Origin: Eutreptiella sp. 'Long Island Sound 2002'
Taxonomy: Eukaryota > Protista > Euglenida
NCBI GenBank assembly: GCA_964036045.1
Contig: OZ038378.1
Span: forward strand, 140,926,001 to 140,990,000
Length of the DNA stretch: 64,000 nucleotides
Direction of reading: 5' to 3'
The notes beneath the pieces are model-generated. The model ran no database searches and was not told the origin of the DNA. It worked only from the letters and a program-made list of their open reading frames with translations. Of the stretch, positions 1 through 17,426 are shown in pieces (the stretch's first letter is position 1; each line of letters starts with the position of its first letter). A program made the translations under genes and the position numbers.

Positions 1-1100
1 GCAACTCATGCAATGTACTGTCCCTGCCTGGAGGCAGTGGGCAGTGGAACTCCTGCAATACACTGCCTCACTGCCTGGGGGCAGCGGGCAGTGCAACTCC
101 TGCAATGCACTGCCTCACTTCCTGGGGACAGTGGGCAGTGGAACTCGTGCAATGCACTGCCTCATTGCCCTGGGGCAGTGGGCAGTGGAACCCCTGCAAC
201 GCACTGCCCCAGTGCCTGGGGGCAGTGGGCAGTGGACCCCTGCAATACACTGCCCCACTGCCTTGGGGCAGTGGGCATTGTAACTCCTGCAATGCACTGC
301 CTCACTGCCTGGGGGCAGTGCAACTCATGCAATGCACTGCCTCACTGCCTGGAGGCAGTTGGCAGGGCAACTCCTGCAATGCACTGCCTCACTGCCTGGG
401 GGCAGCGGGCAGTGCAACTCCTGCAATGCACTGCCTCACTGCCTGGGGGCAGTGGGCAGTGGACCTCCTGCAATACACTGCCGCACTGCCCTGGGGGCAG
501 TGGGCAGTGCAATTCCTGCATTACTCTGCCCCACTGCCTGGGGGCAGTGGGCAGTGGAACCCCTGCAACGCACTGCCCACTGCCCTGGGGGCAGTGGGCA
601 GTGCAACTCCTGCCATACACTGCCTCACTGCCTGGGGGCAGTGGGCAGTGGAACTTCTGCAATGCACTGCCTCACTGCCCTGGGGCAGTGGCCAGTGGAA
701 CTCCCGCAATACACTGCCGCACTTCCTGGGGGCAGAGGGCAGTGGAACTCCTGCAATACACTGCCGCACTGCCTGGGGGCAGTGGGCAGTGGAACTCCTG
801 CAATACACTGCCGCACTGCCTGGGGGCAGTGGAACCCTTGCAACGCACTGCCCCACTGCCTGGGGACAGTGGGCAGTGGACCCCCTGCAATACACTGCCG
901 CACTACCTGGGGGCAGTGGGCAGTGTAACTCCTGCAATGCACTGCCTCACTGCCTGGGGGCAGTGGGCAGTGCAACTCCTGCAATGCACTGCCTCACTGC
1001 CTGGAGGCAGTTGGCAGGGCAACTCCTGCAATGCACTGCCTCACTGCCTGGGGGCAGCGGGCAGTGCTACTCCTGCAATACACTACCGCACTGCCTGGGG
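1..1100. repeat. 47-bp hairpin satellite, block 1 (runs off the window start)
   Basis: Tandem unit approx. GGGGGCAGTGGGCAGTGCAACTCCTGCAATGCACTGCCTCACTGCCT; the two halves of the unit are imperfect reverse complements. Confidence 0.95.
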
Positions 1101-1178
1101 TGTGGTGCCATGCCGTGTGGCGTGGTGTGGTGTGGTGTGGTGTGGTGTGGTGTGGTGTGGTGTGGTGTGGTGTGGTGT
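1100..1178. repeat. (GTGTG)n pentanucleotide tract
   Basis: Direct reading; begins with the variant GTGTGGTGCCATGCCGTGTGG. Confidence 0.95.
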
Positions 1179-1772
1179 GCCGAAGGCGCTGTTACCAAAA
1201 GGCAAAAGGCCGGGATGTCTACCCACGGGTACAGGTAAACGGGCTGGGCTGTGTGTGTTGTGTGCGCGCTGTGCGTAAGTGTGTAGGCCTCGGCAGGGGA
1301 AGGGGGAGTCGGGGAGACCTAGTGAGTTCGCCTCTGGCGACCGCGCTTATTCCAGGAGCTCCTGCTGCACCCCTTCCCTTTCTGCTTGCTGGTGCAGGCG
1401 CAGCTCCTGCAACGCCCACGCCATCGTGCTGCCCGGGCCCAGGCGGGCCTTCTGCAGTGTGGCACGCGCCTTGGCGTGGGCGTACCAGATCCGTATGGAC
1501 TCCTCCACGACGTGGCGGAGGAACTTCGTGCCCAGCGAGTGGGGCCCCGTACACTCCAGGTGGGCTAGCTGCATGGAGGGGGTCTGCAGGGCTGCCGCCC
1601 ACTGCTCCAGCACAGTCGGTTCCCACAGCTGGTGACGCACTGGGGCCGCCCGTGGCCCCACCTTCTGGTCGAGCCACGCTGCGAGGCGCCGGCGGGCTGG
1701 CCCCCACTCGCGCGATTGAGCCGAGCAGGCCCACAGGTGGGCCGCCGTCTCGGGCTGTGTCTCGGGCAGTAG
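1179..1772 (-). mobile_element. 5'-truncated LINE-B: ORF2 C-terminus plus 3' tail
   Basis: The minus frame ending at the TAA at 1347 reads ETAAHLWAC...PARRRLAAWLDQKVGPRAAP...GPHSLGTKFL, an ETxxHLxxC zinc-finger tail typical of LINE ORF2. The 3' tail ...GGTAACAGCGCCTTCGG runs directly into (CACAC)n and recurs at 4319, 21646 and 23368. Confidence 0.8.
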
Positions 1773-2572
1773 ACAGTGCAACTCCTGCAATCCACTGCCT
1801 CACTGCCTGGGGGCGGTGGGCAGTGCAACTCCTGCAATGCACTGCCTCACTGCCCGGGGGCAGTGGGCAGTGCAACTCCTGCAATGCACCGCCTCACTGC
1901 CCTGGGGCAGTGGGCTGTGCAACTCCTGCAATGCACCGCCTCACTGCCCTGCGGCAGTGGACGGCGCAACTCCCGCAATGCACCGCCTCACTGCCTGGGG
2001 GCAGTGGGCAGTGCAACTCCTGCAATACACTGCCTCACTGCCCTGGGGCAGTGGGCAGTGGAACTCCTGCAATGCACTGCCTCACTGCCTGGGGGCAGTG
2101 GACAGTGCAACTCCTGCAATGCACTGTCTCACTGCCCTGGGACGGTGGGCAGTGTAACTTCTGCAATGCACTGTCTCACTGCCCCGGGGCAGTGGGCAGT
2201 GCAACTCCTGCAATGCACTACCTCACTGCCTGGGGGCAGTGGGCAGTGGAACTCCTGCAATGCACTGCCCCACTGCCTGGGGGCAGTGGGCAGTGGAACC
2301 CCTGCAAGGCACGGCCTCACCGCCTTGGGGGCAGTGGGCAGTGCAACTCCTGCAACGCACTGCCTCGCTGCCTGGGGGCAGTGGGCAGTGCAACTCCTGC
2401 AATGCACTGCCTCGCTGCCTGGGGGTAGTGGGCAGTGCAACTTCTGCAATGCACTGCCTCACTGCCCTGGGGCAGTTGGCAGTGGAACTCCTGCAATGCA
2501 CTGCCTCGCTGCCTGGGGGCAGTGGACAGTGCAACTTTGGCAATGCACTGCCCACTGCCCCAGGGCAGTGAG
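1765..2572. repeat. 47-bp hairpin satellite, block 2
   Basis: Same unit as 1-1100; joins the LINE-B fragment through a GGGCAGT microhomology near 1765. Confidence 0.95.
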
Positions 2573-2616
2573 GTGTGGTGTGGTGTGGTGTGGTATGGTG
2601 TGGTGTGGTGTGGTGT
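2572..2616. repeat. (GTGTG)n tract
   Basis: Direct reading. Confidence 0.95.
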
Positions 2617-3429
2617 GGAGGAGGAGGAGGAGGAGGAGCGCCTGCCGTGGTCCCACGTACGGTGAGCCGTGGCGTCGTCCCTGGGGGGCCCCACGCAGGC
2701 TCTGCCGAGGGAGTCCTCCGTCTTACCTCCGCTAGAGTAAGATGAATCTCGTCGCACACCTGAGAACGCCCCTCCCAGCAGGCCGTCTGGGTCTAAGCAC
2801 CGGTGTACGACCACGCTACGGTCTGATCAGCTCTCCGGTCCCGGCCACCGACTGCCCCGATCTGTCCTGGATCCACCCGAGTCAGCGTTCCAAGATCAAC
2901 GTGAGCTGAGAAGGTGTGGGTCTCCCGGGGCCTCACCCCCGACTTGAAAACGTCGCCGGGCTAAATAGAACGCGGCCCAGCACGACTATGCGCACTGCCG
3001 GTGGGCTGAGTACCGCCGGCGTCGCGAGTACGGTCACGCCACACGATCACGCGCACCCCCGGTGGCCTGGGTACCCCCGGGTTATGTGAGTGCGGGACGT
3101 GCGTCACGGCCATAGCACCACGGTGGTGCACCGCCGTGGAGGTCACCGACGACGCCCGGCCGCAAAGGCCGGGCCCAAACGACAAGCCCCACGATACGTG
3201 TACCGAGACGGCACGTGACCGAGAAAATGGCACCACGATGGTGCCCGAGCGAGACGGCGACGTTCGTCAATGGCACGTGAGGCGGTGAGTACCGCCGATG
3301 ACACGTCACCTCTGCACGGGGTGTCACGGAGCTTGGCGGAGCGCCAGGTGCAGACCTCGCCATGGTGCCTCGTGTATCGGCCTGGAGGATACACCATGGC
3401 CAGGCTGGCGCACGAAGACCGTCTGGGCA

Positions 3430-3804
3430 GCACCACGGTGGCGCTCTGCCCTGAAGGTTGCGCCACGACGGCGCATGCGGACGTTGACTGCACCACGGCG
3501 GCGCCATGTCACTGAACTGGCGCCACGTCGGCGCAAGGCTGTCTGGGCAGCGCCGCGGTGGCGCTCTGCCCTGAGGATTGCGCCACGGTTTCGCACGGCC
3601 CTAGAGGAGGCGCAGCACTGGCATACCCGTACGTCAGCTGCGCCACGATGGCGCACGTGCACGCTGGCGGCACCACGATGGCGCTTCGCCACTGGACTGG
3701 CGCCACGGCGGCGTAGGGCTGTCTGGGCAGCGCCACGATGGCGCCCTGCCCCGAAGATCGTGCCACAGCGGCGCACGTATTCGTCGGCGGCACCACGGTG
3801 GTAC
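3430..3804. repeat. 30-bp-period array: 15-nt palindrome GCGCCACGRTGGCGC plus 15-nt spacer, 13 units
   Basis: Palindrome variants start at 3430, 3460, 3490 and so on to 3790 in exact register; spacers recur with a four-unit (120-bp) period. Confidence 0.9.
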
Positions 3805-4004
3805 CCTGCCAGTGAGCCGGCGCGTGAAGGGGGAGCGTGGGTGAGCCTGGGCGGCTGGGGGGCCCTGTCCCTCACGGCACAGCACCGTTCTCCCTCGGGG
3901 GGTGCCCTCGGGGGGTGGCAGGGGTGGGCCCTGGGCTGACGCGGGTGAGCGAGCGAGCGAGTGAGTGAGTGGGTGAGTGAGTGAGTGAGTGAGTAAACAC
4001 GTGG

Positions 4005-4084
4005 CCGTTGCCTGGCTGTGCTTGTGGGCAACCCGTCCCACAGCTACCATCCTGGGGTTTTTTATCCTGGTGCCAGGCCACCAG
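4005..4084 (-). ncRNA. Structured 5' leader (partner copy 1)
   Basis: Minus strand CTGGTG-GCCTGG-CACCAG hairpin, A-rich linker, CCAGG, then a TGTGGG/CCCACA stem; homologous to 14638-14716. Confidence 0.6.
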
Positions 4085-4197
4085 ATATCGAGCAGGTGCA
4101 CTGTGTGTGGCAGCGGTGCATCTGCCCCTCACAGGCTGCACCTCTGGCCCAGGGAGGAGTCCTGGACGGGTGGCGGGCGGGGTGGGCCCGGCCTGAC
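4085..4197 (-). mobile_element. Fragment of the interior of the copy-2 partner subfamily
   Basis: Matches ~16320-16400 (GTGCATCTG...GGCCCAGGGAGG...GGGTGGGCCCGGCCTGAC). Confidence 0.75.
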
Positions 4198-4318
4198 GAG
4201 GTGGTGTGGTGTGATGTGGTGTGGTGCGGTGCGGTGCAGTGCGGTGCGGTGCGGTGCGGTGAGGTGCGGTGCGGTGTGGTGTGGTGAGGTGCGGTGCGGT
4301 GCGGTGCGGTGTGGTGTG
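4198..4318. repeat. (GTGTG/GTGCG)n tract
   Basis: Direct reading. Confidence 0.95.
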
Positions 4319-5220
4319 CCGAAGGCGCTGTTACCAAAAGGCAAAGGCCGGGATGTCTACCCACGGGTACAGGTAAACGGGCTGGGCTGTGTGTGTTGTG
4401 TGCGCGCTGTGTGTAAGTGTGTTGTGGCATGGCCGGACCAGTGCACTCTCGCACTTGGCCGACACTGCCTTGCCGACGCCTGCGCGCAGTCACACAGGGT
4501 CTCATTTGCCCACTGCACCCTGCGTGCCGCGCTGCACAACCAGTGCCTTCTGTGTGGTGCCGCACTGCTTGGTGCTCTGCACCACACTGCACTGTGTGTG
4601 CCCTGCTGCACTGTTGCCGTGGGCAGGGGGCAGTGGGCAGTGGAACTCCTGCAATGCACTGCCGCACTGCCTGGGGGCATTGGGCAGTGGACCTCCTGCA
4701 ATGCACTGCCCCACTGCCTGGGGGCAGTGGGTAGTGGACCTCCTGCAATCCACTGCCTGACTGCCCGGGGGCAGTGGGCAGTGCAACTCCTGCAATACAC
4801 TGCCCCACTGCCTTGGGGCAGTGGGCAGTGGACCTCCTTCAATACACCGCCTCACTGCCTGGGGGCAGTGGGCAGTGGACCTCCTGCAATACACTGCCGC
4901 ACTGCCTGGGGGCAGTGGGCAGTGGACCTCCTTCAATGCACTGCTCCACTGCCTGGGGGCAGTAGGCAGTGGACCTCCCGCAACACACTGCCTCACTGCC
5001 TGGGGGCAGTGGGCAGTGGACTACCTCCTGCAATACACTGCCCCACTGCCTGGGGGCAGTGGGCAGTGCAACTCCTGCAATACACGGCCGCATTGCCTGG
5101 GGGCAGTGGGCAGTGCAACTCCTGCAATGCATTGCCTCACTGCCCTCGGGCAGTAGGCAGTGGAACTCCTGCAATACACTGCCTCACTGCCTGGGGGCAG
5201 TGGGTAGTGCAACTCCTGGT
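4319..5220 (-). mobile_element. Putative satellite-carrying non-autonomous element with a LINE-B 3' tail
   Basis: 4319-~4420 is nearly identical to the LINE-B tail at 1179-1285. About 200 bp of CACTGC-rich sequence follows and grades into the 47-bp satellite, and pentamer tracts lie on both sides. Confidence 0.6.
4625..5220. repeat. 47-bp hairpin satellite, block 3
   Basis: Same unit as blocks 1 and 2. Confidence 0.95.
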
Positions 5221-5235: not shown

Positions 5236-5645
5236 GGAGGAGGAGGAGGAGGAGGAGCGCCTGCCGCGGTCCCACGTACGGTGAGCCTTGGCGTCGTCCC
5301 TCGGGGGCCAAACGCAGGCTCTGCCGAGGGAGTCCTCCGTTTTACCTCCGCTAGAGCAAGACGAATCTCGTCGCACACCTGAGAACGCTCCTCCCAGCAG
5401 GCCGTCTGGGTCACAACGTCAGTGTACGACAACGCTACGGCTCGATCTGCTCTCCGGTCCCGGCCACCAACCGCTCCGAACTGTCCTGGATCCACCCGAG
5501 TAAGCGTTCCAAGATCAACGTGCACGGAAGATGTGGGTCTCCCGGGGCATCACCTCCGACTTAGAACGCCGCCAGACAAGGAGCGCGGTCCGGCACGACT
5601 GCGCGCAGCACCGGAACGGTCCGGGCGCGGGAGGTCGAGGACGGG
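5236..5645 (-). other. LINE-A 3' UTR/tail with a stem-loop and (CCT)n terminus
   Basis: Follows the ORF2 TGA and is conserved in 2617-~3000 and 14966-~15350. The sense strand has a TCCCTCGG/CCGAGGGA stem shortly before the tail. Confidence 0.85.
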
Positions 5646-8600
5646 TCACGGGCGGGGATAGGGCCACGGGGCGGGCCGACCCATGGCCACCTGCATGTCC
5701 TTAAAGACCGTGCGGGGTCCTTGGGAAGCCGCAGTGAGGATGGCCGAGAACGCAGAATGTAGTGCGGCACACCACGAGGGGGTCACATCTCCACAGAGGC
5801 CGGCTTCCAGGCTCCGTCCATTGCCACCGTAATGGATGGCCCAGAGGCGGCGTCGACCTGGGAGATGAGGGGCAAGCCCGTGCCGTCCGAGACTGTCCAA
5901 GATGATGACGTCATGGGGATTCTGCTCCACCTCCTGCCACATGGTCGGCGGAATCTGGTTCGACCCGTTGTACACATACAGGACACGGTACGGACTGTGC
6001 TTGCTCCGGGTGGAGATGACGGACTTCACCTTAGGGGCCAGGAGGAGGTCCCCTGATAGCCAGAGTCCTAGGAGGATGTCCCAGGCCGGCCACCTGCCCG
6101 AGCCGGGCGTTGGGGCCCAGTTGGCTACGTGATACCACTCTGGCGGTGGGTCGTTGGCGAGGGACTGGTTAACGGGGGCCCGCGGTAGGGGAGAGAGGTG
6201 GTCGGCAAGAGGTAGAACGGGCACCGCGTGCCGCTTATGTAGGAGAACGGTAGTGAGAACGACATCGCAGAGTAGGCGACGGAGACGCGCAGGACGCAGA
6301 CCTCTGTGCAGCAGGGCATCCCTGTGTGGCGTGGAGATGGCTCCGAGACGACCAACAGTGTAGGTTGCGATGGTGTGGTGGGCCGGGGAGCCATCCACAG
6401 CCAGTATGAACGGCTCGTCCCCCCAAAGGACGAGGGTGCCCCAAGCAGTGGGCGTACAGTGGCGCCAGGCATGGCACCTCTGAGAGAGTCGGGCCGCCAG
6501 CCACCGATGGTAGTGGGCGCGGATGAGCGGGTCTAGCGGGCACGAGAGGATATGGTCCCCGGAGGCGGGCATGGTGCAGAGGGGGCAGGACGTATCTCTC
6601 GGGGGGAACAGGGAGAGGCGGATGCCGGTGACCGTGAGGTGGTCCCCCCACGTGATGAGACCGTGGCTGACGATGTTGGCGTACTCGTTGAGGTCGGGGA
6701 GGTGTTGTGGCGGGGGGGACGCAGAGAAGGCGTGGTGGGAGGCGAGCAAGGCGCGGCGCGCGTGGGGCACGGCGTCGTGGACCTGGAGGCCCGCGTGGGA
6801 GAAGCAGACGCGGGGTTTCTGTAGGGGGCCGAGCCATCCCACGGCGTCCGGGCAATTGTCCGCAGCTTGCCCTGCCGCTTCGTCCACCCGGTCCAGCAGG
6901 GTATCGAGCCAGGTGCCGGCGATATGGGAATAGAGGTGATGGGGAGGGGCATGACCGTGGGCCATGTCGCGACACGATCTTATGAGATCTCCCTGCAGCG
7001 AGTCTTCCGGCTCGCGGCGCCCTTCCTGCGCCGTGATGTACCCTTTGCAGTCCGCGAAGTGCCACGCACCGGATCGGAAGCCGATGGCAGGGTCGGCTGA
7101 GGGCCCCTTGGCGGTGAGGGCCACCCACGCCGTGTACAGCTCCGCCGTGTAGGCGTTGTCCAGCCTCAAGGGGATGGGGACGGGGTACACCTGGTACCGG
7201 AGGGTGACGGGGCAGAACACCGCCACTGCCCCGCCGCAGCGCCGGGTCTTCGGGCACCACGACGCGTCGTGGAGGATCCCATAGTTCTCAGGGAGCCAGG
7301 AGAACGTGGGGACGGTCGCAGTCACCGCTTGGCAGCGTCTAACCGGGGGGACGGTGCCGACCGGCGGAGTGGGGCGGGGCGAGGCCCGGGGCCACCCCTT
7401 GCGTCGCGCGTCCTCTGTACTGCGACGGCCCGCAAGCATCCACGCGTGGGTGTCCTGGACCTCGAGTCCGGGTGACGACAGGGCCAGCACATGGGGGGTG
7501 TGGTGTGGCAGATGGCTGTCAGGGGGTAAGTGGATGGCGATGTCGCACCGGTGGCACAGGGCAACAAATAGATCGTGGTCTGTGGGGTGTGCGGTGCACC
7601 GGAGTCCGAGCTCCGGGGTGAGGCAGGGCTGGGAAGGATGGAACCGCCAGAGGGCAGTGAGGAGCCCGTGGCGCGTGGACCGGCAGACCAGGGAGTTGGG
7701 GTGGTTCAGGTGTCGGATGTAGACGCCGAAGAAGTTAGTAAACCCAACGACCGGTGCCGGGGGTATACCGACTCCCCCTTCGGGGACCTCACGGAGGAAG
7801 TGAGCAGAGGCGGAGAGGGTCCACCCAGCGGTGGCGCGCATGGCCGAGGCGGTCATGGCGTCCAGCACGCGCAGGGCCCCGTAGGAGGGGGGGCGGACAC
7901 TGGTAAACCAGTTGACCGTCCCATGACACTTGGCAGTATACATGGCGAGGGGGTAGTGGGCGGGGAGTCGTGGGGCGCGGAGCGCCCGGCACGCAGCGCG
8001 GGCGCCCGAGAACAGGCGCCGGGAGTCGACGGGATGGAAGAGGTGGGGAAGGGCATGGCGGCCAAGGACGCGGACGTAGTCCTGGCTCGTGGCACATCGC
8101 ACGGGGTGACCATTGAGGTATACCGTGTCGTTGAGGAAATAGACCTGACCATCGCGCATGTCGGTGCCGATCAAGACCGTTTTTGTTGGGTCTGGGTGGA
8201 GGTTGGTGAGGCGGCCCGCTCTCTCAATGCCGCTGGCGAGGGCGGGCAAATGGCAACGGTCGCCTGGCAGCCACTGGGTGTCATCCATCAGGAGAACCCG
8301 GTTCAGCGGGCCCGCGGGGGTGTCGGTGGGGGGGATGGAACGGCAGGCTTCGTGCCCCCGAACTTCGCCATATATGCAGTACTTCATGCCGGACACGGGG
8401 CATCCTTGCCCCGTGCCGGCCCCCAGCCGGGTGGAGGACGGAGAGCGTCCGTCAGCTCCCCCCATGTGCACCTCAAGGGCGCGGTCATGGTGCTGAAGGG
8501 TCGCGGCGTCGGTCGGGGAGATCCCTGCGGCGGTGAGGACGGCGTACTCGGTGGTGTGGTTGATTGAGCCATAGGCGTGGCGGACATCGTCCGACAGGAC

Positions 8601-10940
8601 CCACGCTTCAAGGCGTCTGCGCCAGCGGTCCCACCATACATCGTGTAGGACGCGGAGTAGCTCCACGGAGGAGCAGTGCGGGGACATCCCGAACTGGTAG
8701 GGCGGCAGGATGCCGTTCTGAACCAGGCGGGGTTGGTAGTGGTCTTTGATGAGGGCAGCCGTGAGCTTCCATATCGTGGCCAGATTGGTCAGCGGTCTGC
8801 CGTTCGCAATGGGGCCGTGCGGCGTCTTTTTCGGAAGGTTGATGAAGTCTGCAGAGTGTGCCTGGGGCACGGGCACCCCACGGAGAATACTGTTGATCAG
8901 GCTCACGATCGCCGCAAACTGGGCATCCTCCAATTGTCCGAACAGCCGGTACTCCAGTAAGTCGTGGTACGGCACAGTGGCCGCCGCCCGGCGGATGATG
9001 GCCCGCAGGTTTGCGGTGGTGGCGTTGGGTGGTGGGCCGAGCGGTCTTTCCTCCCATCCCGTGATGGTCCGGACGCGCGCGAGTGAGAGCGCCTCAAGAG
9101 GGGCAAGGTGCCTTTGGCGCAGCTGGTCCAACGCAACTGCGGCTTGTTGATGAAGAGGTACTGGGACGCCCACCACGTAGACCGGATCCGCTGGGGGTAC
9201 GTAGCGCGCCCCCAACGTGCGGCGGTAGTCCACTTTGGTGGGTTGGCCAGGGGCAGCGGGTAGGGGCGCCAGCCCTACATCCTTCTCCAGAAGGAGAACG
9301 TCCCAGGCCGCTCGGATGCGTTCTTTGAGGCGGGCGACCTCCACGAGGTGTGACGATTGGGACGCCCAATCCGGGTAGGCGAGCGTGTAGCGTTGAAGGT
9401 TGGTGACGTGGACACGTACCGTCGACGGTACCGGCTGGCTGGGGACGGGGGGCCCGTAGGCAGCCGTAGCCGCGGTGTATAGCGCTGAGGTCACCTCGGT
9501 ATAGCGTGGCTGCGCTTCGGGCGCGCCTGGGGGCGGCGCAGCGAGTTCGGCCTGAAAGGTGTCGTTGAGGGTGCGGAGCTGGCTGGCGAGGGGCTCCCGC
9601 GGGATGGGGAAGCGGCCCTTTTTCGAAGGGCATACCAATTGGGGCGCTGGCGGGAGGTCATGGAGGGTGGCAGTCACGGGTAGGTGGTCAGATGGGAAAC
9701 TGGAATCGGAGCGCACCTCCGTGGTGTGGGCTGCTTCCGAAGGGGCGCGGAGGAAGATGTGGTCCAGGGCACCGGCGAAACCTTGCGGGCTCACCCACGT
9801 GGGGGCCTCCGCAAGGGGGCGTAGACGGCGCATCCCAAGGCGCGTGAGCGTGGGGAGGACGAGGTCACAGAGGGAGGCAGGGGAGACAGGGAGGTGCGAG
9901 ACCCAGCGGCAGTTGGCGTTCAGGTCCCCTGTCAGGACAACCACTCTAGCCGGGGTGAGGAGGAGGTACGGGTACACCCAATCCAGGACTTCTTGGAGCG
10001 TGTCGAGGTTCCCGTCGGCGGGGAGATACACGTTGGCGTGGCAGTGGGTCACGCCAGCCATGGTGAAGTGCGTGACGAGGGCTCGTCCCGACGGGTGGGC
10101 GCTGTGGCCGGTCACGACCAGGTCCGGGGTCCTGTAGAGGAGGGTGGCACATCCCCCAGCTATTCTTGCAGGTGCCTGGATGGTGTGGTACAGGGGGTGC
10201 ACCCGTTGGATGATCTGGGGCCCCGCTTCTTGAACATGCAGGGTTAGCGGGTACTGGCACTCGCGCACCAGGACGTCCAGGGCGCGGAGCTTGGGTCGCA
10301 GGGACATCTGCACGTTGAGGGTCATCACGTCTGGGCGGGGCGACACGTGGCCGGTGGGGGGGGGACCAGGGCAGGAGCTGGCGACGGTGGAGTGCTGGGT
10401 TAGCTTGCGGTCCACGGCTGCGGGGAGGGCGCAAGGTAGGCCTCGCACCCACTTGCGGAGGTGCCGGTGGTGGTACGTGGCCGCCATCGCCAAGACACTG
10501 GCCCGGGTGAGGCCTGTGGCTGTGATGGAGACGCGGCTGTGTAGGGATTGTGGGAGGACCACGTGGTGATGCTCGGGCAAGATGAAGGAGGTGGGTGGCA
10601 GGCCTTTGCGGCAGAGCTGCAACTGATGGGAGCCCGTCACCTGCACACAGTGCACGGCGCCCACTAACGACAGAACGTTACGGGGCCAGGGGTCCGCCCC
10701 GCTGCACGCCCGGTAGTAGTGCACACCCACCGGCAGGTGCAGGCACATTTCGAGGGCATAGGGGGGCGTGATGAACTGGGCAGTGCCCGAGGCCGGTACC
10801 GGTACCAGGCCCCACTCTCTGGGGGGGGAGCTGGGAGTGTATGCGCCCAGGTGCAGGTCCCGGACATGGGGGACGCCGTCGAGGTGGGAGTGGCGGAGCT
10901 GAGACACGGCGGCAGGGATGTCCTCGTTGCGCCCCGCCAT
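5646..10940 (-). CDS. LINE ORF2 (1764 aa): unknown N-domain, APE endonuclease, reverse transcriptase, RNase H, CCHC finger, unknown C-domain
   Basis: APE (~10331-9663): TLNV, HVQE, ANVYLP, LTGDLNA, ALDHIF, SDHLPV. RT (~9000-8040): GRPLTNL, YQFGM, LSDDVRHAYGSI, GTGQGCPVS, LLMDD. RNase H (~7285-6860): LHDAS, TAEL, FADC, YSHI, RVDEAA. Finger (6587-6540): CPLC-x7-H-x3-C. Confidence 0.95.
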   Translation of the reverse strand: MAGRNEDIPAAVSQLRHSHLDGVPHVRDLHLGAYTPSSPPREWGLVPVPASGTAQFITPPYALEMCLHLPVGVHYYRACSGADPWPRNVLSLVGAVHCVQVTGSHQLQLCRKGLPPTSFILPEHHHVVLPQSLHSRVSITATGLTRASVLAMAATYHHRHLRKWVRGLPCALPAAVDRKLTQHSTVASSCPGPPPTGHVSPRPDVMTLNVQMSLRPKLRALDVLVRECQYPLTLHVQEAGPQIIQRVHPLYHTIQAPARIAGGCATLLYRTPDLVVTGHSAHPSGRALVTHFTMAGVTHCHANVYLPADGNLDTLQEVLDWVYPYLLLTPARVVVLTGDLNANCRWVSHLPVSPASLCDLVLPTLTRLGMRRLRPLAEAPTWVSPQGFAGALDHIFLRAPSEAAHTTEVRSDSSFPSDHLPVTATLHDLPPAPQLVCPSKKGRFPIPREPLASQLRTLNDTFQAELAAPPPGAPEAQPRYTEVTSALYTAATAAYGPPVPSQPVPSTVRVHVTNLQRYTLAYPDWASQSSHLVEVARLKERIRAAWDVLLLEKDVGLAPLPAAPGQPTKVDYRRTLGARYVPPADPVYVVGVPVPLHQQAAVALDQLRQRHLAPLEALSLARVRTITGWEERPLGPPPNATTANLRAIIRRAAATVPYHDLLEYRLFGQLEDAQFAAIVSLINSILRGVPVPQAHSADFINLPKKTPHGPIANGRPLTNLATIWKLTAALIKDHYQPRLVQNGILPPYQFGMSPHCSSVELLRVLHDVWWDRWRRRLEAWVLSDDVRHAYGSINHTTEYAVLTAAGISPTDAATLQHHDRALEVHMGGADGRSPSSTRLGAGTGQGCPVSGMKYCIYGEVRGHEACRSIPPTDTPAGPLNRVLLMDDTQWLPGDRCHLPALASGIERAGRLTNLHPDPTKTVLIGTDMRDGQVYFLNDTVYLNGHPVRCATSQDYVRVLGRHALPHLFHPVDSRRLFSGARAACRALRAPRLPAHYPLAMYTAKCHGTVNWFTSVRPPSYGALRVLDAMTASAMRATAGWTLSASAHFLREVPEGGVGIPPAPVVGFTNFFGVYIRHLNHPNSLVCRSTRHGLLTALWRFHPSQPCLTPELGLRCTAHPTDHDLFVALCHRCDIAIHLPPDSHLPHHTPHVLALSSPGLEVQDTHAWMLAGRRSTEDARRKGWPRASPRPTPPVGTVPPVRRCQAVTATVPTFSWLPENYGILHDASWCPKTRRCGGAVAVFCPVTLRYQVYPVPIPLRLDNAYTAELYTAWVALTAKGPSADPAIGFRSGAWHFADCKGYITAQEGRREPEDSLQGDLIRSCRDMAHGHAPPHHLYSHIAGTWLDTLLDRVDEAAGQAADNCPDAVGWLGPLQKPRVCFSHAGLQVHDAVPHARRALLASHHAFSASPPPQHLPDLNEYANIVSHGLITWGDHLTVTGIRLSLFPPRDTSCPLCTMPASGDHILSCPLDPLIRAHYHRWLAARLSQRCHAWRHCTPTAWGTLVLWGDEPFILAVDGSPAHHTIATYTVGRLGAISTPHRDALLHRGLRPARLRRLLCDVVLTTVLLHKRHAVPVLPLADHLSPLPRAPVNQSLANDPPPEWYHVANWAPTPGSGRWPAWDILLGLWLSGDLLLAPKVKSVISTRSKHSPYRVLYVYNGSNQIPPTMWQEVEQNPHDVIILDSLGRHGLAPHLPGRRRLWAIHYGGNGRSLEAGLCGDVTPSWCAALHSAFSAILTAASQGPRTVFKDMQVAMGRPAPWPYPRP

Positions 10941-10948
10941 GTCCCGGG

Positions 10949-13948
10949 TTACCGGTCCCGCGGACGCCGACCGAAGTACGGCTGGTAGCGGTGGGGGTCG
11001 GCTGGGGGGCTCCAGGGCGGGGGAGCGTAGGGGTTGTGGGCCATGGCCACTCGGGGGTCGTGGGGGTCCCCCGAGTACGGGTAGGGCAGGAGAGGGGCTG
11101 CTGCATGGTGGTCGTGGCGGCTGGAAAGCGCTTGTGGCTCATCGCGGTACGCGCTGCGACGCCTCGGCGGCGGGCTGTCGCGGCGATGGCCTGGGCTGCG
11201 GCGGCGGGACGGGGACCGGTCCGAGCGGCGGGGGCTGTACCTGCGCTGATATTTGGAGTCTGGTTCTCCGTCCGATCCCGACGTTGCCGTAAGGTCCACC
11301 TGATCCTCAGGGTCCCGTGGACGGCGCTGCTTCCCGCGGCTTCCCCGATGAGTCTTCCGGGGCGGACGGTCTCGGTCTCGGTCAGGGTCAGGCACCCAGG
11401 GCGTAAACGGTTGTTTCTTCGATTCGGCCCACGTCACTCGCCAGCCACGAGCCGTGTGTTGCCTCGTCAGTCGCATGCCGCGCTCGTACTCCGCTGGTCG
11501 GATTCCGACGATTGTGAACTTGGATGTATGGTTCAATTGTTCTTCAGTAATAGAGGAAAGGCCTGCACCAAATTTATCCCGAAGGATACCACCGAGGAGT
11601 CCTGCATCAACTTCACCGGACGGCGGATCGTCGACTTCTTGCCAGCCGACCCACAGGGCTTTCGAGTAGACTTGCGGATCGATTTTTTGGGGTGTATACC
11701 CCTTCTTTTTCGCTGCGCCCTGTGCCTGGTTGGCGGCTGCAGCTTCTGATGGGGAGGTGGCTGGGCTGGCGGAAACCTGCTGGACTGCAGGGGGGTTGGA
11801 GAGGAAGGAGCGCAGGACTTCCGCGATGCCGGGCAGGCTGGGCGCGTGGCTGTGGACCCAGGCCCACTGCTCCCGGATCGGCGACTGCGGGAGGGTGTCG
11901 ACCTTCGCGCCGTACTGGCGGAAGAGCTGGAGGTGGAGCGCGTGCGCAACCTCGTCCTCACAGCCCTTGGGGATCCCCGGGATCCACTCCAGCAGGTCGG
12001 TCAGGGCGGCATCGGCAGGCGACGGCAGAGACGGCGTCGGCTGGGCGGTCGCGCCCGGTGCCCGAAAGGCAGAGACCGCCCTCGGCTTAGGGATCGGTTC
12101 CGGGACTGCGAACGACAGTTCGGGCGCACGCGCAGGGGCCTCCGGGACCGGCACGGCGCCTGGCGCGGCCATAGCCCTACGGAGGACGTCGGCCAACTCC
12201 TCGAGGTTGGGTGCCTGGGGCGAGGTGAGAACTGCTGCGGCGAGGATGACCGGCACGAGGACCAGGAACTGCTGAGAGCCGGGGGGGGGCAGCTCGAATG
12301 AAGCCGGAACGGTACTGCGCACGGCGTTGGCGAATGCCGGCGGCGTGGACTGGAGGCCGTGGAGTCTGGTGGCGATGGACAGGAGGGGGGGTACCGACCT
12401 GATGAAGTTGTTGAGCCTGACGGCTTCGGTCTGCCGCTGTGCCGCGGCGCAACGCTGGGCCTGCTGCTGGGCATTATCCCGTTCGGTGCGCATCACGTCC
12501 AGGTCCCGCGCGAGGGACTCCAGGTCGCCCCGTGCCACGGCCAGCTCCCGTCGTTGGGCCTCATACTCGTCATGCAATTGAGCGTAGTCGGTGGAGTAGG
12601 CCGTGACATCCAGGTCCGGGACAAAAGGCTCCCCCACCTGGGAGGGGCTGGGGGGGGCCGACCCGACGGCCGGGGCCGGTGACTCCGGAGGCGTGGGGTC
12701 TGCGGCAGCCGGTGGTACCTGGGAGGCAGGCTCTGGGAGATTGAAAGAAAGCCTTGTCTGTTCGGGCAACAGTGATGAAGGCGATGGTTCGGACCCTGAG
12801 GGGGTGGGCTTGCCCTGGGCCTTGTACAGGGCTGACGCTGGGGTGAACGCCGCCGTGGCGAACAGAGTGCCGGCGGGGCTGGGCGCCGATTGTCCTTTGG
12901 TGAGGTAAGGTGCGTGGCTGGGCGGCGTGAGCGGGGGCGGGTTGGCGGTGTCGGCGATGCCGGCCTGCAGCAGGGCGAAAGTGGGGGCTGTGGCCCAGGA
13001 GTGCTCACCAGCCTGCTCGATCTGATGCAGCAGCTCCACGCTGCGGATCGGCAAGATCGAGCACTCGAGCAGCGGCCGCAGCTGTTCGGGGGTCCACATG
13101 CCCTTGTTGGCGAGGGCGGGGGGTGTGGGAACGGGGGCTGGCGTGTACTGTCCTGTGAGGCAGACGGAGGAGGCCCACGCTAGGAGCCCGAACTTCAGCG
13201 GGACGAGGTCTGCTGTCGGGATGTGGGCTGCCTGCAGGACCGCATGCACGTCGTTGGGTAGCGCCCAAAAGGCCGCAACTACCTCTCGGGTGCGGAGGCG
13301 GTCCCATGACGGTCTGAGGTGGGGGGCAAGGAACTGGCTGATGGGCTTGTGGATCTTGTGGGAGACCTTCTGGCTTTGGATGTCCGGAGGGCCGGCAGTG
13401 TCGACGGGCGGTGGCTGTTCGCGGGCTGTGTACAGGCCCTTGAAGACTTGGTTGCGGAGGCGTGACGCCGAAATTGGGGCATGGCTTGGGCTCCACCGCG
13501 TGACGAGAGCCGCTGTGAGGGCCTCAGGGTCCTTGGAGATATACTCCAGCAGTGGGCCTCCTTGTACCAGCGACAGGGGGACGTGCTCGATGACCTTCGT
13601 GTCAGACGGGCCTGCGGCGACCGTTACGGTGGCTGTGAGCAGGAGCCCCCGCGGCGTCCACACCCCCGTCACCGCTGTAATAGCCTGGATGTCGCCGTTG
13701 GCAGCCGTCCACCGCAGGGCATCACACAAGTCAGCCAGGGCGGGGTCGGTGGCCTGGATAGCCGTATCTGCCGCTTCCAGTGCGTCATCCTTCAGCATGT
13801 CCAGTTCTCGCAGCAGACGGTCAGCATCGTCGGACTGGGCGATGTCCATCAGAAACATGGGGAACGGCCCCTGACGAATGGCGCCGCCTCGACCGGTGTC
13901 GGGGGCGGGAGAGGGGGTGTCCTGGGACGGTGTTGAGCGGTCTGACAT
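10949..13948 (-). CDS. LINE ORF1 (~999 aa from the ATG at 13948): coiled coil, RRM-like domain, RS/RD-rich tail
   Basis: Open frame directly upstream of ORF2 with an 8-nt gap. Heptad-rich YAQLHDEYEAQRRELAVARGDLESLARDLDVMRTERD (~12600-12400); KALWVGW...ILRDKFG...KFTIVGI...WRVTWAE has RRM topology (~11670-11415); RRYSPRRSDRSPSRRRSP tail. The track starts the ORF at a TTG at 13990. Confidence 0.88.
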   Translation of the reverse strand: MSDRSTPSQDTPSPAPDTGRGGAIRQGPFPMFLMDIAQSDDADRLLRELDMLKDDALEAADTAIQATDPALADLCDALRWTAANGDIQAITAVTGVWTPRGLLLTATVTVAAGPSDTKVIEHVPLSLVQGGPLLEYISKDPEALTAALVTRWSPSHAPISASRLRNQVFKGLYTAREQPPPVDTAGPPDIQSQKVSHKIHKPISQFLAPHLRPSWDRLRTREVVAAFWALPNDVHAVLQAAHIPTADLVPLKFGLLAWASSVCLTGQYTPAPVPTPPALANKGMWTPEQLRPLLECSILPIRSVELLHQIEQAGEHSWATAPTFALLQAGIADTANPPPLTPPSHAPYLTKGQSAPSPAGTLFATAAFTPASALYKAQGKPTPSGSEPSPSSLLPEQTRLSFNLPEPASQVPPAAADPTPPESPAPAVGSAPPSPSQVGEPFVPDLDVTAYSTDYAQLHDEYEAQRRELAVARGDLESLARDLDVMRTERDNAQQQAQRCAAAQRQTEAVRLNNFIRSVPPLLSIATRLHGLQSTPPAFANAVRSTVPASFELPPPGSQQFLVLVPVILAAAVLTSPQAPNLEELADVLRRAMAAPGAVPVPEAPARAPELSFAVPEPIPKPRAVSAFRAPGATAQPTPSLPSPADAALTDLLEWIPGIPKGCEDEVAHALHLQLFRQYGAKVDTLPQSPIREQWAWVHSHAPSLPGIAEVLRSFLSNPPAVQQVSASPATSPSEAAAANQAQGAAKKKGYTPQKIDPQVYSKALWVGWQEVDDPPSGEVDAGLLGGILRDKFGAGLSSITEEQLNHTSKFTIVGIRPAEYERGMRLTRQHTARGWRVTWAESKKQPFTPWVPDPDRDRDRPPRKTHRGSRGKQRRPRDPEDQVDLTATSGSDGEPDSKYQRRYSPRRSDRSPSRRRSPGHRRDSPPPRRRSAYRDEPQALSSRHDHHAAAPLLPYPYSGDPHDPRVAMAHNPYAPPPWSPPADPHRYQPYFGRRPRDR

Positions 13949-14637
13949 GGTAGCTGTGGCGAGAAAAGAGCGGGTGGCCTGTGGCCGCAATATGTTGGGG
14001 GGGGGGAGCAGATCGAGGTGTCGGCAAACGGAGGTGCACTGACATCATAGGCAGCCCCAGTCGGATGGGGCGCGCAGGAGAGAAACAAGGGGTACCACGA
14101 GCGTGGCCATAGTGTGACAAAACAAAGAGCATGGCGCGATGGCGCGGAGTAACATGGGGCCGCCTGGCGGACCGGGTCGGTGAGCGGGGGTCCCAGGACA
14201 CACAGGGCGGGGATGCGAGGGGAGCACCGCACTGGCGCGTGGTGCTGCAACCCTAGTGGCGCACGGGAGCGAGGGGCCCCACGTTGGGACGACGAATCGG
14301 ACGACTGATGATACCCCTGCACAAGGCGTCACGCTTGAGCGGCGGATACGTCGAATGCAGTCCCCGTCGCGGCTCCCCGCGTAGCGGCCTGGAAGATTGC
14401 CACGGCGAGGTCGACGTCTTGCCAGAGACGAACGTATAACGACGTGCCCACTGTGAGCAGGAAACGGCTTGCAAGGGGGAGGGACGCACTTGAGGTGCGG
14501 CACTCAGCCCTTGGAGACACGGGACGAAGAGGGAGAGAGAGAGTGCACCATACGGGTGGAGCTGAGCGGAGAGGGGGCCACGATGGCAGAGCTGAGTCAC
14601 GTGGTGGCACGACTATCACGACGATTCACGATTGGTG

Positions 14638-14716
14638 TCGAGCGTGGCAGTGCGTGTAGGCAATCCGTCCTACAGCTACCATCCTGAGGGTTTTTAGACT
14701 GGTGCCAGGTCACCAG
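14638..14716 (-). ncRNA. Structured 5' leader of LINE-A
   Basis: Sense CTGGTGACCTGGCACCAGTCTAAAAACCCTCAGGATGGTAGCTGTAGGACGGATTGCCTACACGCACTGCCACGCTCGA; four copies in the window, with one compensatory base-pair change. Confidence 0.6.
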
Positions 14717-14965
14717 TGGTGTGGTGTGGTGTGGTGTGGTGTGATGCGGTGAGGTGCGGTGTAGTGGGGTGCGGTGCGGTGCGGTGAGGTGCGGTGCGGT
14801 GCGGTGCGGTGTGGTGCTGTGTGGTGCGGTGCGGTGCGGTGCGGTGCGGTGCGGTGCGGTGCGGTGCGGTGAGGTGCGGTGCGGTGCGGTGCGGTGCGGT
14901 GGGGTGGGGTGGGGTGGGGTGGGGTGGGGTGTGGTGCGGTGCGGTGCGGTGCGTTGCGGTGCGGT
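14717..14965. repeat. Mixed (GTGTG/GTGCG/GTGGG)n tract
   Basis: Direct reading. Confidence 0.95.
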
Positions 14966-15782
14966 GGAGGAGGAGGAGGAGGAGGAGGAGGAGCGCCTGC
15001 CGTGGTCCCACGTACGGTGAGCCGTGGCGTCGTCCCTCGGGGGCCCCACGCAGGCTCTGCCGAGGGGGTCCTCCGTCTTACCTCCGCTAGAGTAAGACGA
15101 ATCTCGTCGCACACCTGAGAACGCTCCTCCCAGCAGGCCGTCTGGGTCACAGCGTCGGTGTACGACAACGCTACGGTCCGATCTGCTCTCCGGTCCCGGC
15201 CACCGACTGCCCCGAACTGTCCTGGATCCACCCGAGTCAGCGTTCCAAGATCAACGTGAGCGGAAGATGTGGGTCTCCCGGGGCATCACCCCCGACTTGA
15301 AAGCGGCGCCGGGCTAAATAGAACGCGGCCCAGCACGACTATGCGCATTGCCGGCGGGCTGAGTACCGCCGGCGTCGCGAGTACGGTCACGCTACACGAT
15401 CACGCGCACCGCCGGTGGCCTGGGTACCCCCGGGTTCTGTGAGTGCGGGACGTGCGTCATTGCCATAGCACCACGGTGGTGCACCGCCGTGGAGGTCACC
15501 GAGGACGCCCGGCCGCAAAGGCCGGGCCCAAACGACGAGCCCTACGATACGCGCACTGAGACGGTACGTGACCGAGAAAGTGGCACCACGATGGCGCCTG
15601 AGCGAGACGACGACGTTCGCCGATGGCACGTGAGGCGGTGAGTACCGCCGATGACACGTCACCTCTGCACGGGGTGTCACGGAGCTTGGCGGAGCGCCAG
15701 GTGCAGACCTCGCCATGGTGCCTCGAGTATTGGCCTGGAGGACACACCATGGCCAGGCTGGCGCACGAAGACTGTTTGGGCT

Positions 15783-16292
15783 GCGCCACGGTGGCGCTCT
15801 GCCCTGAAGGTTGCGCCACAACGGCGCACGTGTACGTTGACCGCACCACGGTGGTGCCACGTCACTGAACTGGCGCCACGTCGGCGCAGGGCTGTCTGGG
15901 CAGCGCCGCGGTGGCGTTCTGCCGTGAGGATTGCGCCATGATGGCGCACGTGTACGTTGGCGGCACCACGATGGCGCTCTGCCACTGAACTGGCGCCACG
16001 GAGGCATGGGGCTGTCCGGGCAGTGCCACGACGGCGCTGTGCCCCGAACACTGCGCCACGGTAGCTGCACCACAGTGGTGTGCTGCCACGGAAGTGGCGC
16101 CACGTTGGCGCTGGACTGTTTGGGCGGCGCCACGGCGGCGCTCTGCCAAGAAGGCCGTGCCACGACGGCGCTCTGCCCAGAAGGCCGCGCCACGACGGCG
16201 CACGGGTACGTTCGCGGCGCCACGATGGTGCCCTGCCATTGAGCCCGCGCCATGTCGGCGCAGAGCTATCGGGGCAGGCGCCACGTTGGCGT
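15783..16292. repeat. 30-bp-period hairpin/spacer array, ~18 units
   Basis: Units at 15783 through 16053 every 30 bp, a 16-bp deletion, then 16067 through 16247 every 30 bp, and one more at 16278. Confidence 0.9.
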
Positions 16293-16444
16293 CTGGCGGT
16301 CGGGGGGAGGCCACGTATGTGCATCTGTCCCCCACAGGACTGCATGTCTGGCCCAGGGAGGGGTCCTGGACGGTTGGCGGGCGGGGTGGGCCCGGCCTGA
16401 CACAGGGAAGACGCACGAGAAATCGAGACGTATCACGACTGGCT

Positions 16445-16523
16445 TCGAGCGTGGCAATGCGTGTGGGCAATCCGTCCCACAGCTACCATCCTGAGGGTTT
16501 TTAGACTGGTGCCAGTTCACCAG
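16445..16523 (-). ncRNA. Structured 5' leader (partner copy 2)
   Basis: Homologous to 14638-14716. Confidence 0.6.
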
Positions 16524-16849
16524 AGGTGCGGTGGGGTGCGGTGCGGTGCGGTGCGGTGCGGTGCGGTGCGGTGGGGTGCGGTGCGGTGGGGTGGGGTGGG
16601 GTGGGTTGTGGTGTGGTGTGGTGCGGTGCGGTGCGGTGCGGTGGGGTGCGGTGCGGTGCGGTGGGGTGGGGTGGGGTGGGGTGGGGTGGTGTGGGGTGTG
16701 GTGTGGTGTGGTGCGGTGCGGTGCGGTGGGGTGTGGTGCGGTGCGGTGCGGTGCGGTGCGGTGCGGTGCGGTGGGGTGTGGTGCGGTGCGGTGCGGTGCG
16801 GTGTGGTGCGGTGTGGTGCGGTGCGGTGCGGTGCGGTGCGGTGCGGCGC
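16524..16849. repeat. Mixed pentamer tract
   Basis: Direct reading. Confidence 0.95.
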
Positions 16850-17176
16850 GGCGCACGGGTACGTTCGCGGCGCCACGATGGTGCCCTGCCATTGAGCCCG
16901 CGCCATGTCGGCGCAGAGCTGTCGGGGCAGGCGCCACGTTGGCGTCTGGCGGTCGGGGGGAGGCCACGTATGTGCATCTGTCCCCCACAGGACTGCATGT
17001 CTGGCCCAGGGAGGGGTCCTGGACGGTTGGCGGGCGGGGTGGGCCCGGCCTGACACAGGGAAGACGCACGAGAAATCGAGACGTATCACGACTGGCTTCG
17101 AGCGTGGCAATGCGTGTGGGCAATCCGTCCCACAGCTACCATCCTGAGGGTTTTTAGACTGGTGCCAGGTCACCAG
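16850..17176 (-). mobile_element. Duplicate of the 5' ~327 bp of partner copy 2
   Basis: Near-identical to 16197-16523 (offset 653 bp); lacks a 3' tail. Confidence 0.9.
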
Positions 17177-17426
17177 AGGTGCGGTGGGGTGCGGTGCGGT
17201 GCGGTGCGGTGTGGTGCGGTGCGCTGGGTTGTGGTGTGGTGTGGTGTGGTGTGGTGTGGTGTGGTGTGGTGTGGTGTGGTGTGGTGTGGTGTGGTGTGGT
17301 GTGGTGTGGTGTGGTGTGGTGTGGTGTGGTGTGGTGTGGTGTGGTGTGGTGTGGTGTGGTGTGGTGTGGTGTGGTGTGGTGTGGTGTGGTGTGGTGTGGT
17401 GTGGTGTGGTGTGGTGTGGTGTGGTG
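17177..17426. repeat. Long (GTGTG)n tract
   Basis: About 40 near-perfect GTGTG units after a short mixed stretch. Confidence 0.97.

Follow-up and report, generated by a model that had tools for sequence, protein, structure and literature searches.

The window considered here is a stretch of 64,000 nucleotides from Eutreptiella sp. 'Long Island Sound 2002' (contig OZ038378.1, C1:140,926,001-140,990,000; assembly size 2.28 Gb), whose first 25 kb carry retrotransposons of the long interspersed nuclear element (LINE) type separated by tracts of a pentamer microsatellite. We consider it probable (about 0.7) that two nested LINE systems meet here: LINE-B, which bears the pentamer as its 3' tail, and LINE-A, which together with a short non-autonomous partner integrates almost exclusively into long tandem arrays, whatever their sequence. 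The G+C content is 63-67% in the first 17.5 kb versus 47-62% beyond. Tandem Repeats Finder (TRF) detected eight period-5 tracts between positions 1115 and 24791 of the window, with the plus-strand unit GGTGT/GGTGC (CACCR on the minus strand). These are located at 1115-1179, 2568-2618, 4203-4316, 14718-14966, 16525-16851, 17178-17426, 21506-21629 and 24651-24791.

When the minus strand is read, a retroelement 3' end is found directly upstream of a pentamer tract at every element end listed below. TRF and the strand reading thus confirmed the statement of the initial annotation that retroelement 3' ends in the window abut pentamer tracts, all on the minus strand. Two types of ends were distinguished. 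Type A reads ...GGCAGGCGCTCC(TCC)n and was found at 14966, 5236 and 2617, the positions at which the ...CAGGCGCTCC(TCC)n tail terminates. Type B reads ...GGTAACAGCGCCTTCGGCAC, or a diverged form of it, and was found at ~1177, 4316, 21647 and 23369; a related ...GATGCAC end is located at ~24792. Two tracts had to be corrected: the one past 5236 (5218-5235) is only ~18 nt long and is followed by a 47-bp satellite, and the one past 23368 is degenerate and measures ~29 nt. Eight same-strand pentamer tracts within 25 kb, all beside element ends, are far beyond chance; TRF repeats make up 4.4% of the window from 26 to 64 kb.

LINE-A is encoded on the minus strand at 5236..14716 (~9.48 kb) and comprises, in this order, a 5' leader, open reading frame (ORF) 1, ORF2, a 3' untranslated region (UTR) and a (TCC)7 tail. 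The two ORFs are intact, as had been annotated. ORF1 extends from 13990 to 10949 (1013 codons; first Met at 13948, ~1000 amino acids) and is separated by 8 nt from ORF2 (10940-5646; 1764 amino acids). The ORF1 product contains a coiled-coil stretch and an Arg/Ser/Asp-rich C-terminus; searched as three pieces, it gave no meaningful Pfam match. In ORF2, an N-terminal region of ~200 amino acids is followed by an apurinic/apyrimidinic endonuclease (APE) domain (~204-426), a reverse transcriptase (RT) domain (~650-1000), an RNase H domain (~1200-1390), a CCHC knuckle (~1452-1466) and a C-terminal region of ~300 amino acids.

Pfam matches of the LINE-A ORF2 were weak, with both RVT_1 (amino acids 703-924) and Exo_endo_phos_2 (302-422) remaining under the curated cut-offs. 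Close copies of ORF2 carry a precomputed PF03372 match, and a relative of 33% identity (P0010) matches PF03372 at an E-value of 6e-13. By this sequence evidence, LINE-A is an APE-type non-long terminal repeat retrotransposon with an APE-like endonuclease N-terminal to the RT. Pfam gave no RNase H match in ORF2. An AlphaFold2 model of amino acids 1150-1420 (mean pLDDT 69), however, retrieved exclusively RNase HI/H1 structures among its top 50 Foldseek matches, the best being E. coli RNase HI (E-value 3.4e-6, probability 1.00), and the modeled fold identifies an RNase H domain C-terminal to the RT, a feature of the LINE groups I, Tad1, LOA, R1 and Ingi. Searches of both ORF2 ends, including the first 200 amino acids, against Pfam yielded nothing meaningful. 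The C-terminal ~300 amino acids are conserved down to ~50% identity among subfamilies; the AlphaFold2 model of the conserved C-terminal 364 amino acids was unusable (pLDDT 40). The hallmarks of target-primed reverse transcription, i.e. target site duplications (TSDs), (TCC)7-17 tails and the lack of terminal repeats, are found in the LINE-A system.

Word-indexed and exhaustive searches with ORF2, one of them with a profile, returned solely unnamed proteins from Euglena assemblies or environmental sequences, and no sequence relative outside Euglena assemblies and environmental contigs was retrieved. The ESM Atlas offered only generic LINE clusters with RT plus RNase H, and phmmer found no match in the PDB. 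Since the relatives are all unnamed, and the sequence searches returned no reference from a named clade, LINE-A was not assigned to one. The contigs of two distant relatives (P0010 and P0026) stop before the 3' ends of the elements. We found no description of either the LINE-A or the LINE-B family in the literature, where the E. gracilis genome paper reports bulk LINE percentages only; the earlier remark that it was not recognized as a described family is in keeping with this and with the unnamed protein relatives, mainly from Euglena assemblies. A single protein cluster at 90% identity holds 385 full-length ORF2 sequences, and the window LINE-A is ~97% identical to 25 other sampled copies over the last 1.65 kb. 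Hence the element, taken at first for a master copy, is one of hundreds of intact copies rather than a single master.

Two non-coding elements of 1558 nt (partner 1, 14966..16523) and 1468 nt (partner 2, a variant, 2617..4084), both on the minus strand, carry the two ends of LINE-A. LINE-A and the partners have 76-97 nt at their 5' ends and 375 nt at their 3' ends in common, with 85-91% identity; partner 1 has the leader, the last 375 nt and the (TCC)n tail, and in an alignment LINE-A nucleotides 2-98 and the last 375 nt were shared at 91% identity. That an APE-type LINE is accompanied here by partners sharing its termini was therefore stated correctly before. The cargo of partner 1 consists of 30/60/120-bp periodic units around short GCGCCACNNTGGCGC-type palindromes, and such periodic cargo occupies 15772-16201 and 3423-3608. 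The interval between the tail of partner 1 and the head of LINE-A (14717..14965, minus strand) is a (CACCR)n tract and represents target DNA, as judged from TRF and the minus-strand reading; its sister tracts are located at 16525-16851, 17178-17426, 4203-4316, 2568-2616, 1115-1176 and 5218-5235.

A partner-internal fragment of ~115 nt (4086-4202, minus strand) lies directly upstream of partner 2. A partner 5' fragment at 16852..17176 on the minus strand was copied, along with its pentamer tract, in a local duplication of 653 bp: positions 16196-16495 and 16849-17148 (repeat family D7) are 100% identical at a spacing of 653 bp. This identity rules out a third, separate partner insertion at 17176-16852, and the duplication most likely resulted from a recent unequal exchange between tracts. 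Elsewhere in the genome, four partner copies of 1567-1568 nt with TSDs were recovered. At several loci, partners lie only a few kb apart, and tight clusters of this kind probably mark large target arrays. The candidate table also lists five copies in both orientations within 11 kb (C4:157138685-157149982) and two partners 1.8 kb apart (C5:2279464-2281441).

The 5' leader of ~97 nt that LINE-A and its partners have in common (14620..14716, minus strand) was delimited by alignment and folding. Its predicted first hairpin, CUGGUG/CACCAG, has a 6-nt loop which could pair with CUCAGG 12 nt downstream. In the predicted second hairpin, one compensatory pair distinguishes LINE-A (UGUAGG/CCUACA) from the partners (UGUGGG/CCCACA). 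The RNAfold z-score of -1.6 is not significant. An Rfam scan of window positions 1-26000 with E-values up to 10 detected no ribozyme, including the HDV type, at the leader; the only matches were miRNA-like chance hits in the palindromic 47-bp satellite. Manual threading onto an HDV-like fold failed because the 6-nt loop of the first helix leaves no room for P2 and P3, and neither a pistol nor a hatchet topology fits. The leader starts with CTGGTGACCTGGCACCAG in comparison to CCCTGGCTCAGCCGG of L1Tc (Pr77 taken from published primers) without convincing similarity, and was rejected as a Pr77 sequence. Between 29 and 49% of the sampled words of the LINE-A 5' UTR were present in four estuary metatranscriptome runs; these are contigs, which show neither transcription nor 5' ends.

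The pentamer itself belongs to LINE-B. In the window, the minus strand at 1177..1763 contains the last 585 nt of this element including the end of its ORF, terminates in ...GGTAACAGCGCCTTCGGCAC and continues into an (ACCAC)n tail (1115-1176). A second LINE-B-like 3' end at 4316..4625 shares only its last 87 nt with 1198-1284 (family D11, 95%) and has a pentamer tail at 4203-4315. At 21647..23340 an older, diverged LINE-B-like composite is made up of degenerate 47-bp-like repeats, a unique part, a ...GTAAACAGTGCCTTGGGCAC end and a tail at 21506-21629; further B-like ends were read from the minus strand at 23369 and ~24792.

A search with the last 151 nt of LINE-B produced 1190 candidates genome-wide; this number and those given below for LINE-A and its partner refer to first-look candidates, of which the scored copies were 96-100% identical. 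In all 30 LINE-B loci studied the conserved ...GGCAC end runs into a tail with a period of 5, which comprises between 3 and more than 36 units. Most tails are built of ACCAC, and in some copies the whole tail is AACAC (L036, L054), AGCAC (L038, L051) or ATCAC (L060). Thus, tails keep the pattern A-N-C-A-C with a second base that varies between copies and is uniform within a tail, which would fit either reiteration of a single template unit in each tail or inheritance of the tail from the source copy. Non-repeat DNA follows the tail in 16 copies; in the other 14 the post-tail flank is repeat, and the mean repeat share of the post-tail flanks is 30%. The pentamer is an element-borne 3' tail of LINE-B. 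At least 16 copies continue upstream into an open frame. LINE-B is regarded as an autonomous LINE because this C-terminal ORF comprises at least 493 amino acids with a CCHC knuckle (seen in L044-L046), as deduced from the translated sequence. The LINE-A and LINE-B proteins can be aligned over the CCHC knuckle only.

On the other hand, the pentamer is also a favored landing pad of LINE-B. It is present upstream as well in 3 of 5 independent 5'-truncated LINE-B copies and in all copies of the window, from which it follows that existing tails act as landing pads, and one copy (L034) is flanked by a TSD of ~35 bp starting at the edge of a pre-existing pentamer tract. The view that the pentamer is a pre-existing target holds in this respect for LINE-B, and fails in so far as the tract is the tail of the element itself. 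Likewise, the expansion of the microsatellite suspected earlier applies to LINE-B, whose tails seed the tract. As in the window, a LINE-B tail, here of 36 units, directly adjoins a LINE-A head at another locus (L040). A repeated element CTGAGTACTCCCCAG...GGCTGGGTGCCGGGTGCGAAGCCC starts exactly at the end of the pentamer at five loci (L037, L053, L056, L058, L093) and may represent a further family landing in or beside pentamer tracts.

Arrays of the 47-bp unit were detected by TRF at 3-1100, 1764-2570 and 4626-5218. The array at 1764..2570 (minus strand) is fused to the LINE-B 3' end with a fixed junction, the other two being its sister arrays. The same junction between array and 585-nt segment recurs in 6 of the 30 LINE-B copies (among them L035, L036, L040, L041 and L048). 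The resulting composite consists of 15-21 units of 47 bp, the last 585 nt of LINE-B and a pentamer tail, shows 90-93% identity on other chromosomes and may be a vehicle that spreads the 47-bp satellite.

The flanks of LINE-A copies differ from those of LINE-B. Candidates numbered 1454 for the LINE-A 3' end (query: last 149 nt before the tail; 40 scored with 99-100% identity, 30 loci fetched), 1138 for the 5' end (30 loci fetched; 5' junction sequence CTGGTGACCTGGCACC) and 767 for the partner. Tandem repeats adjoin 64 of 67 sampled ends of the LINE-A family: according to TRF, 32 of 33 3' flanks and 32 of 34 5' flanks consist of repeat over the 50 nt next to the junction, and 29 of the 30 fetched 5' loci have a tandem repeat upstream of the head. 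Two of the three remaining flanks are junctions between repeats, leaving a single one (L066) with ~70 nt of non-repeat DNA. The mean repeat share of the 300-nt flank amounts to 95-97%. In the published E. gracilis assembly, by comparison, TRF repeats account for 9.85% (PMC11252322). Even if only ~50 independent junctions are counted, a chance origin of this distribution is excluded by tens of orders of magnitude. The sequence of ~70 nt upstream of the LINE-A head in L066, ...GTCGTCGGTTCGAATCCCTG..., resembles a tRNA T-arm and may, by this similarity, derive from a tRNA gene or a tRNA-derived short interspersed nuclear element.

About 19 distinct units of 4-51 bp are hit in the sample. They include the 47-bp satellite in both orientations, (CACTCACC)n, a 13-mer (CCCCTCAGTTGCA)n, (TGCAC)n, (CACCT)n and (CACCGC)n, in addition to units of 23 to 51 bp such as those of 31, 43 and 51 bp. 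The target tracts range in length from 132 to more than 1500 nt, and most exceed 400 nt. None of the sampled LINE-A insertions is in (TTAGGG)n. It had been proposed that LINE-A is a site-specific family whose endonuclease recognizes (CCRCA)n, comparable to TRAS/SART at telomeric repeats. The window by itself would favor this, as all its LINE-A-type elements are flanked by pentamers on both sides, and a few other copies (L010, L080) are in pentamers as well. Pentamers were found, however, at only 2 of 30 3' flanks, one of them the window itself, and 2 of 30 5' flanks. Thus, about 4 of ~65 ends (~6%) lie in pentamers, the others lying in unrelated repeats with proper TSDs, and at least 10 junction positions fall within one 47-bp unit. 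Tabulating the flanks of the LINE-A tail copies, which had been suggested as a check, hence placed most sampled ends in unrelated tandem repeats, and recognition of (CCRCA)n is now hardly tenable. The restriction to arrays of unrelated sequence with strict strand choice is more unusual than the pentamer specificity first put forward. LINE-A as a parasite of the tails of other LINEs was also considered and rejected as a general rule, since several target tracts are preceded by unique DNA without an element end. Co-oriented head-to-tail arrays in repeat tracts, noted before for the window, were also observed as LINE-A stacks in other repeats (L062, L086).

Complete elements of the LINE-A family have the same repeat on both sides. 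Seven resolved insertions showed TSDs of 4-14 bp with a mode of 6. Four partner copies have the duplications TCTTGC, TGCC (+A), TCAGTT (+A) and ACCCCT, and a further partner TSD is ACTGC; a full LINE-A on an independent ENA contig has the 14-bp duplication TGGGGCAGTGGGCA, and the 9.4-kb element whose two ends were sampled as L090 and L025 has TCACCC. At the two pentamer flanks of the window LINE-A a 6-nt suffix/prefix match (ACACCA) fits a 6-bp TSD. The 5' ends are located precisely at CTGGTGACC in 28 of 30 copies, and LINE-A copies differ by ~3% over 1.65 kb.

These data bear on the idea that a few founder insertions inside repeats were multiplied into arrays by unequal crossing-over or segmental duplication. 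The 100% identical 653-bp duplication of the window and the identical flanks of three sampled loci (L004-L006) are examples of such events. Yet at least 50 sampled junctions on many chromosomes differ in flanks, phases and TSDs, which indicates repeated insertion rather than duplication of founders; we regard a general spread by recombination as scarcely credible.

The orientation of LINE-A within its targets is strongly biased. Among ~36 flanks outside the 47-bp satellite, C exceeds G on the element sense strand in all but two (L019 and L021, with target units of 51 and 43 bp that are not C-rich overall). The 47-bp satellite possesses one C-rich half on each strand, CCACTGCCCACTGCCCCC and CACTGCCTCACTGCC, and all 12 3' junctions mapped to this unit fall into whichever half is rich in C on the sense strand of the element; at least 10 different positions within the unit are used. 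With the pre-insertion sequence rebuilt from the repeat period, 27 of 29 targets would have had C at -1, and none G at +1; junctions often have the form CAC^Y, C^ACY or CC^T. A pairing of 1-3 nt with the C-rich tail would explain both the orientation and the co-orientation of copies within a tract. It fails to explain the avoidance of unique DNA, because such short motifs are everywhere at 50-65% G+C.

Near-random insertion with survival in tandem repeats only, copies elsewhere being deleted or selected against, would also produce a distribution restricted to repeats, and such passive accumulation has been put forward for the Waldo-A/B elements located near CA repeats in Drosophila (PMC3812793). 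For LINE-A we consider it very improbable. The copies are young (96-100% identical), and other repeats, which account for more than half of the 2.3-Gb genome (PMC11252322), should be neutral ground. Moreover, LINE-B is as young and as abundant, yet about half of its copies are located beside non-repeat DNA. Strand bias and junction microhomology reflect how an element inserts, not which copies are retained.

The following sequence of events is proposed for the two systems. The LINE-B RNA would end in ...GGCAC plus (ACCAC)n and insert into unique DNA and also, in many cases, beside or inside pentamer tracts, most likely through annealing of the tail in the latter case. Each insertion would seed and lengthen pentamer tracts on the same strand. 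LINE-A (~9.48 kb) and its partner (1.57 kb) would enter long tandem arrays by endonuclease-initiated target-primed reverse transcription. In this process the locally G-rich strand may be nicked, and 1-3 nt of the exposed end may base-pair with the C residues that terminate the (UCC)n tail of the RNA, in analogy to the poly(A) tail of L1, which pairs with T-rich primers. This pairing would fix the orientation such that the element sense strand is the C-rich strand, resulting in one-way head-to-tail copies per tract. A second, regional cue would be needed to mark tandem-array DNA; non-B or slipped structures, repeat chromatin and a repeat-borne base modification are candidates. The anatomy of the elements, the restriction of LINE-A to repeats and its strand bias, the TSDs, the microhomology at the junctions and the nature of the pentamer as a tail are direct observations; the annealing steps are what we infer, and this holds even more for the regional cue. 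Applied to the window, LINE-B types and composites would have inserted head to tail and left same-strand pentamer tracts, which LINE-A and two partners would then have entered in the sole orientation allowed by priming; one unequal exchange would finally have duplicated 653 bp. Thus, the window LINE-A used LINE-B tails as one of many repeat targets.

Several points weigh against this explanation. All ~19 target units contain CAC and C-rich runs on the sense strand, and this is also what a pure motif-density preference would give. We found no protein domain or RNA feature that reads tandem-repeat DNA (Pfam was blank for ORF1 and for the ORF2 ends, and the C-terminal model was poor). The sample covers ~65 ends out of more than 1000, taken from the best-scoring copies and including a few segmental duplicates (L004-L006). 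The background was derived from the published E. gracilis figure and from this window rather than from a random genome sample, and LINE-B 5' ends were seen in only 5 independent genomic copies.

The first of these points leads to the alternative that sequence alone directs LINE-A to a short degenerate C-rich motif (CAC/CC followed by Y), with arrays being hit preferentially through avidity or the number of tries. The frequent CAC^Y, C^ACY and CC^T junctions, the C at -1 and the strong strand bias are in line with it. Such motifs are very common in unique DNA, yet only 1 of ~65 ends is located outside a repeat, and the 51-bp and 43-bp target units are not C-rich overall; we therefore consider targeting by sequence alone unlikely, and favor a repeat-generic cue over motif density only modestly. 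That LINE-A reads no sequence at all and senses the tandem-array state via a repeat-specific DNA structure or chromatin mark is a tentative proposal, which we ourselves hold to be somewhat doubtful. By analogy to related organisms base J may be a concrete candidate for the cue. According to PMC1874636, this base occurs in the nuclear DNA of Euglena, and trypanosomes carry it in telomeric and other simple repeats.

Several LINEs are known to be associated with microsatellites. As listed in PMC3812793, which reviews Kojima and Fujiwara 2004, APE-type elements with this specificity comprise Waldo (ACAY)n, Mino (AC)n, Kibi (TC)n, Koshi (TTC)n and Dong (TAA)n. LINE-A resembles them in its APE-type endonuclease, the strand-specific integration into simple repeats and the co-oriented arrays. 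In contrast to these elements with one fixed motif each, it occupies at least 19 unrelated units of 4-51 bp at many positions. The confinement to one motif that characterizes microsatellite LINEs is found neither for LINE-A, given its ~19 units, nor for LINE-B, given the non-repeat DNA past the tail in 16 of 30 copies. TRAS1 and SART1 are Bombyx LINEs of telomeric repeats that cut one defined position of (TTAGG)n and have poly(A) tails. They share with LINE-A the strand-specific insertion into a short G/C-skewed tandem repeat and the head-to-tail stacking, and differ in using a single site and a poly(A) tail in place of a (TCC)n tail, variable positions and many repeats.

The pairs ingi/RIME and L1Tc/NARTc of the trypanosomatids, which also belong to the Euglenozoa, resemble LINE-A and its partner in that a LINE and a short element share their 5' and 3' termini (PMC3185411, PMC4035085). 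Similarities to ingi and L1Tc extend to an ORF2-type protein with APE, RT and RNase H and to a conserved structured 5' leader of ~80-100 nt (PMC3185411, PMC4035085). In contrast, LINE-A has two ORFs, ends in (TCC)n instead of poly(A) and contains a leader unlike Pr77 and the HDV-like fold; the hallmark of Pr77, a 5' sequence of 77-79 nt doubling as an HDV-like ribozyme, is not present.

LINE-B can be compared with LINEs carrying microsatellite tails, such as the CR1/L2-type elements and the I-factor with (TAA)n, or L1, whose poly(A) tails seed microsatellites (in part PMC3812793). As in these elements, the LINE-B tail is variable and element-borne, seeds microsatellites and can prime re-insertion at matching tracts. 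In contrast, its unit is the pentamer A-N-C-A-C with a copy-specific second base, and we know of no described parallel for this variation. The composite is reminiscent of SVA, a composite non-autonomous retroelement of hominids with a 3' module from an endogenous retrovirus. As in SVA, an internal array, here of 47 bp, is joined to a 3' end, derived from a LINE and carrying the tail, and the composite would be mobilized in trans; it is unrelated to SVA in sequence, and its 3' module stems from its own LINE.

To our knowledge, all well-studied target-specific LINEs read one sequence, be it ribosomal DNA, a telomeric repeat or a single microsatellite, and repeat-sensing retrotransposition is a targeting mode not known for LINEs. 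A phrase search of the literature found no LINE reported to target tandem repeats generically, which is weak negative evidence. With its strict choice of strand and its confinement to arrays of unrelated sequence, this young family of more than 1000 copies points to a different kind of cue, namely structure, chromatin or base modification, and LINE-A offers many natural insertion sites for working out the targeting cue. This is of interest as target-specific LINEs are the main natural model for safe-harbor integration. In the 2.3-Gb genome of this protist, microsatellites, satellites and LINEs appear to be interlinked: LINE-B tails make pentamer tracts, a LINE-B derivative spreads the 47-bp array, and LINE-A colonizes both. 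LINE-A, its partner, LINE-B and the composite are high-copy families which are probably contained in the 33% 'unknown' repeats of the published assembly.

Three other tandem repeats were observed in the remainder of the window. A degenerate interstitial tract of the (TTAGGG)n type covers ~130 nt at 31247-31379, a satellite with an 82/244-bp period comprises ~7 units at 32678-33267, and two copies of a 167-bp unit with 98% identity are located at 52813-53154.

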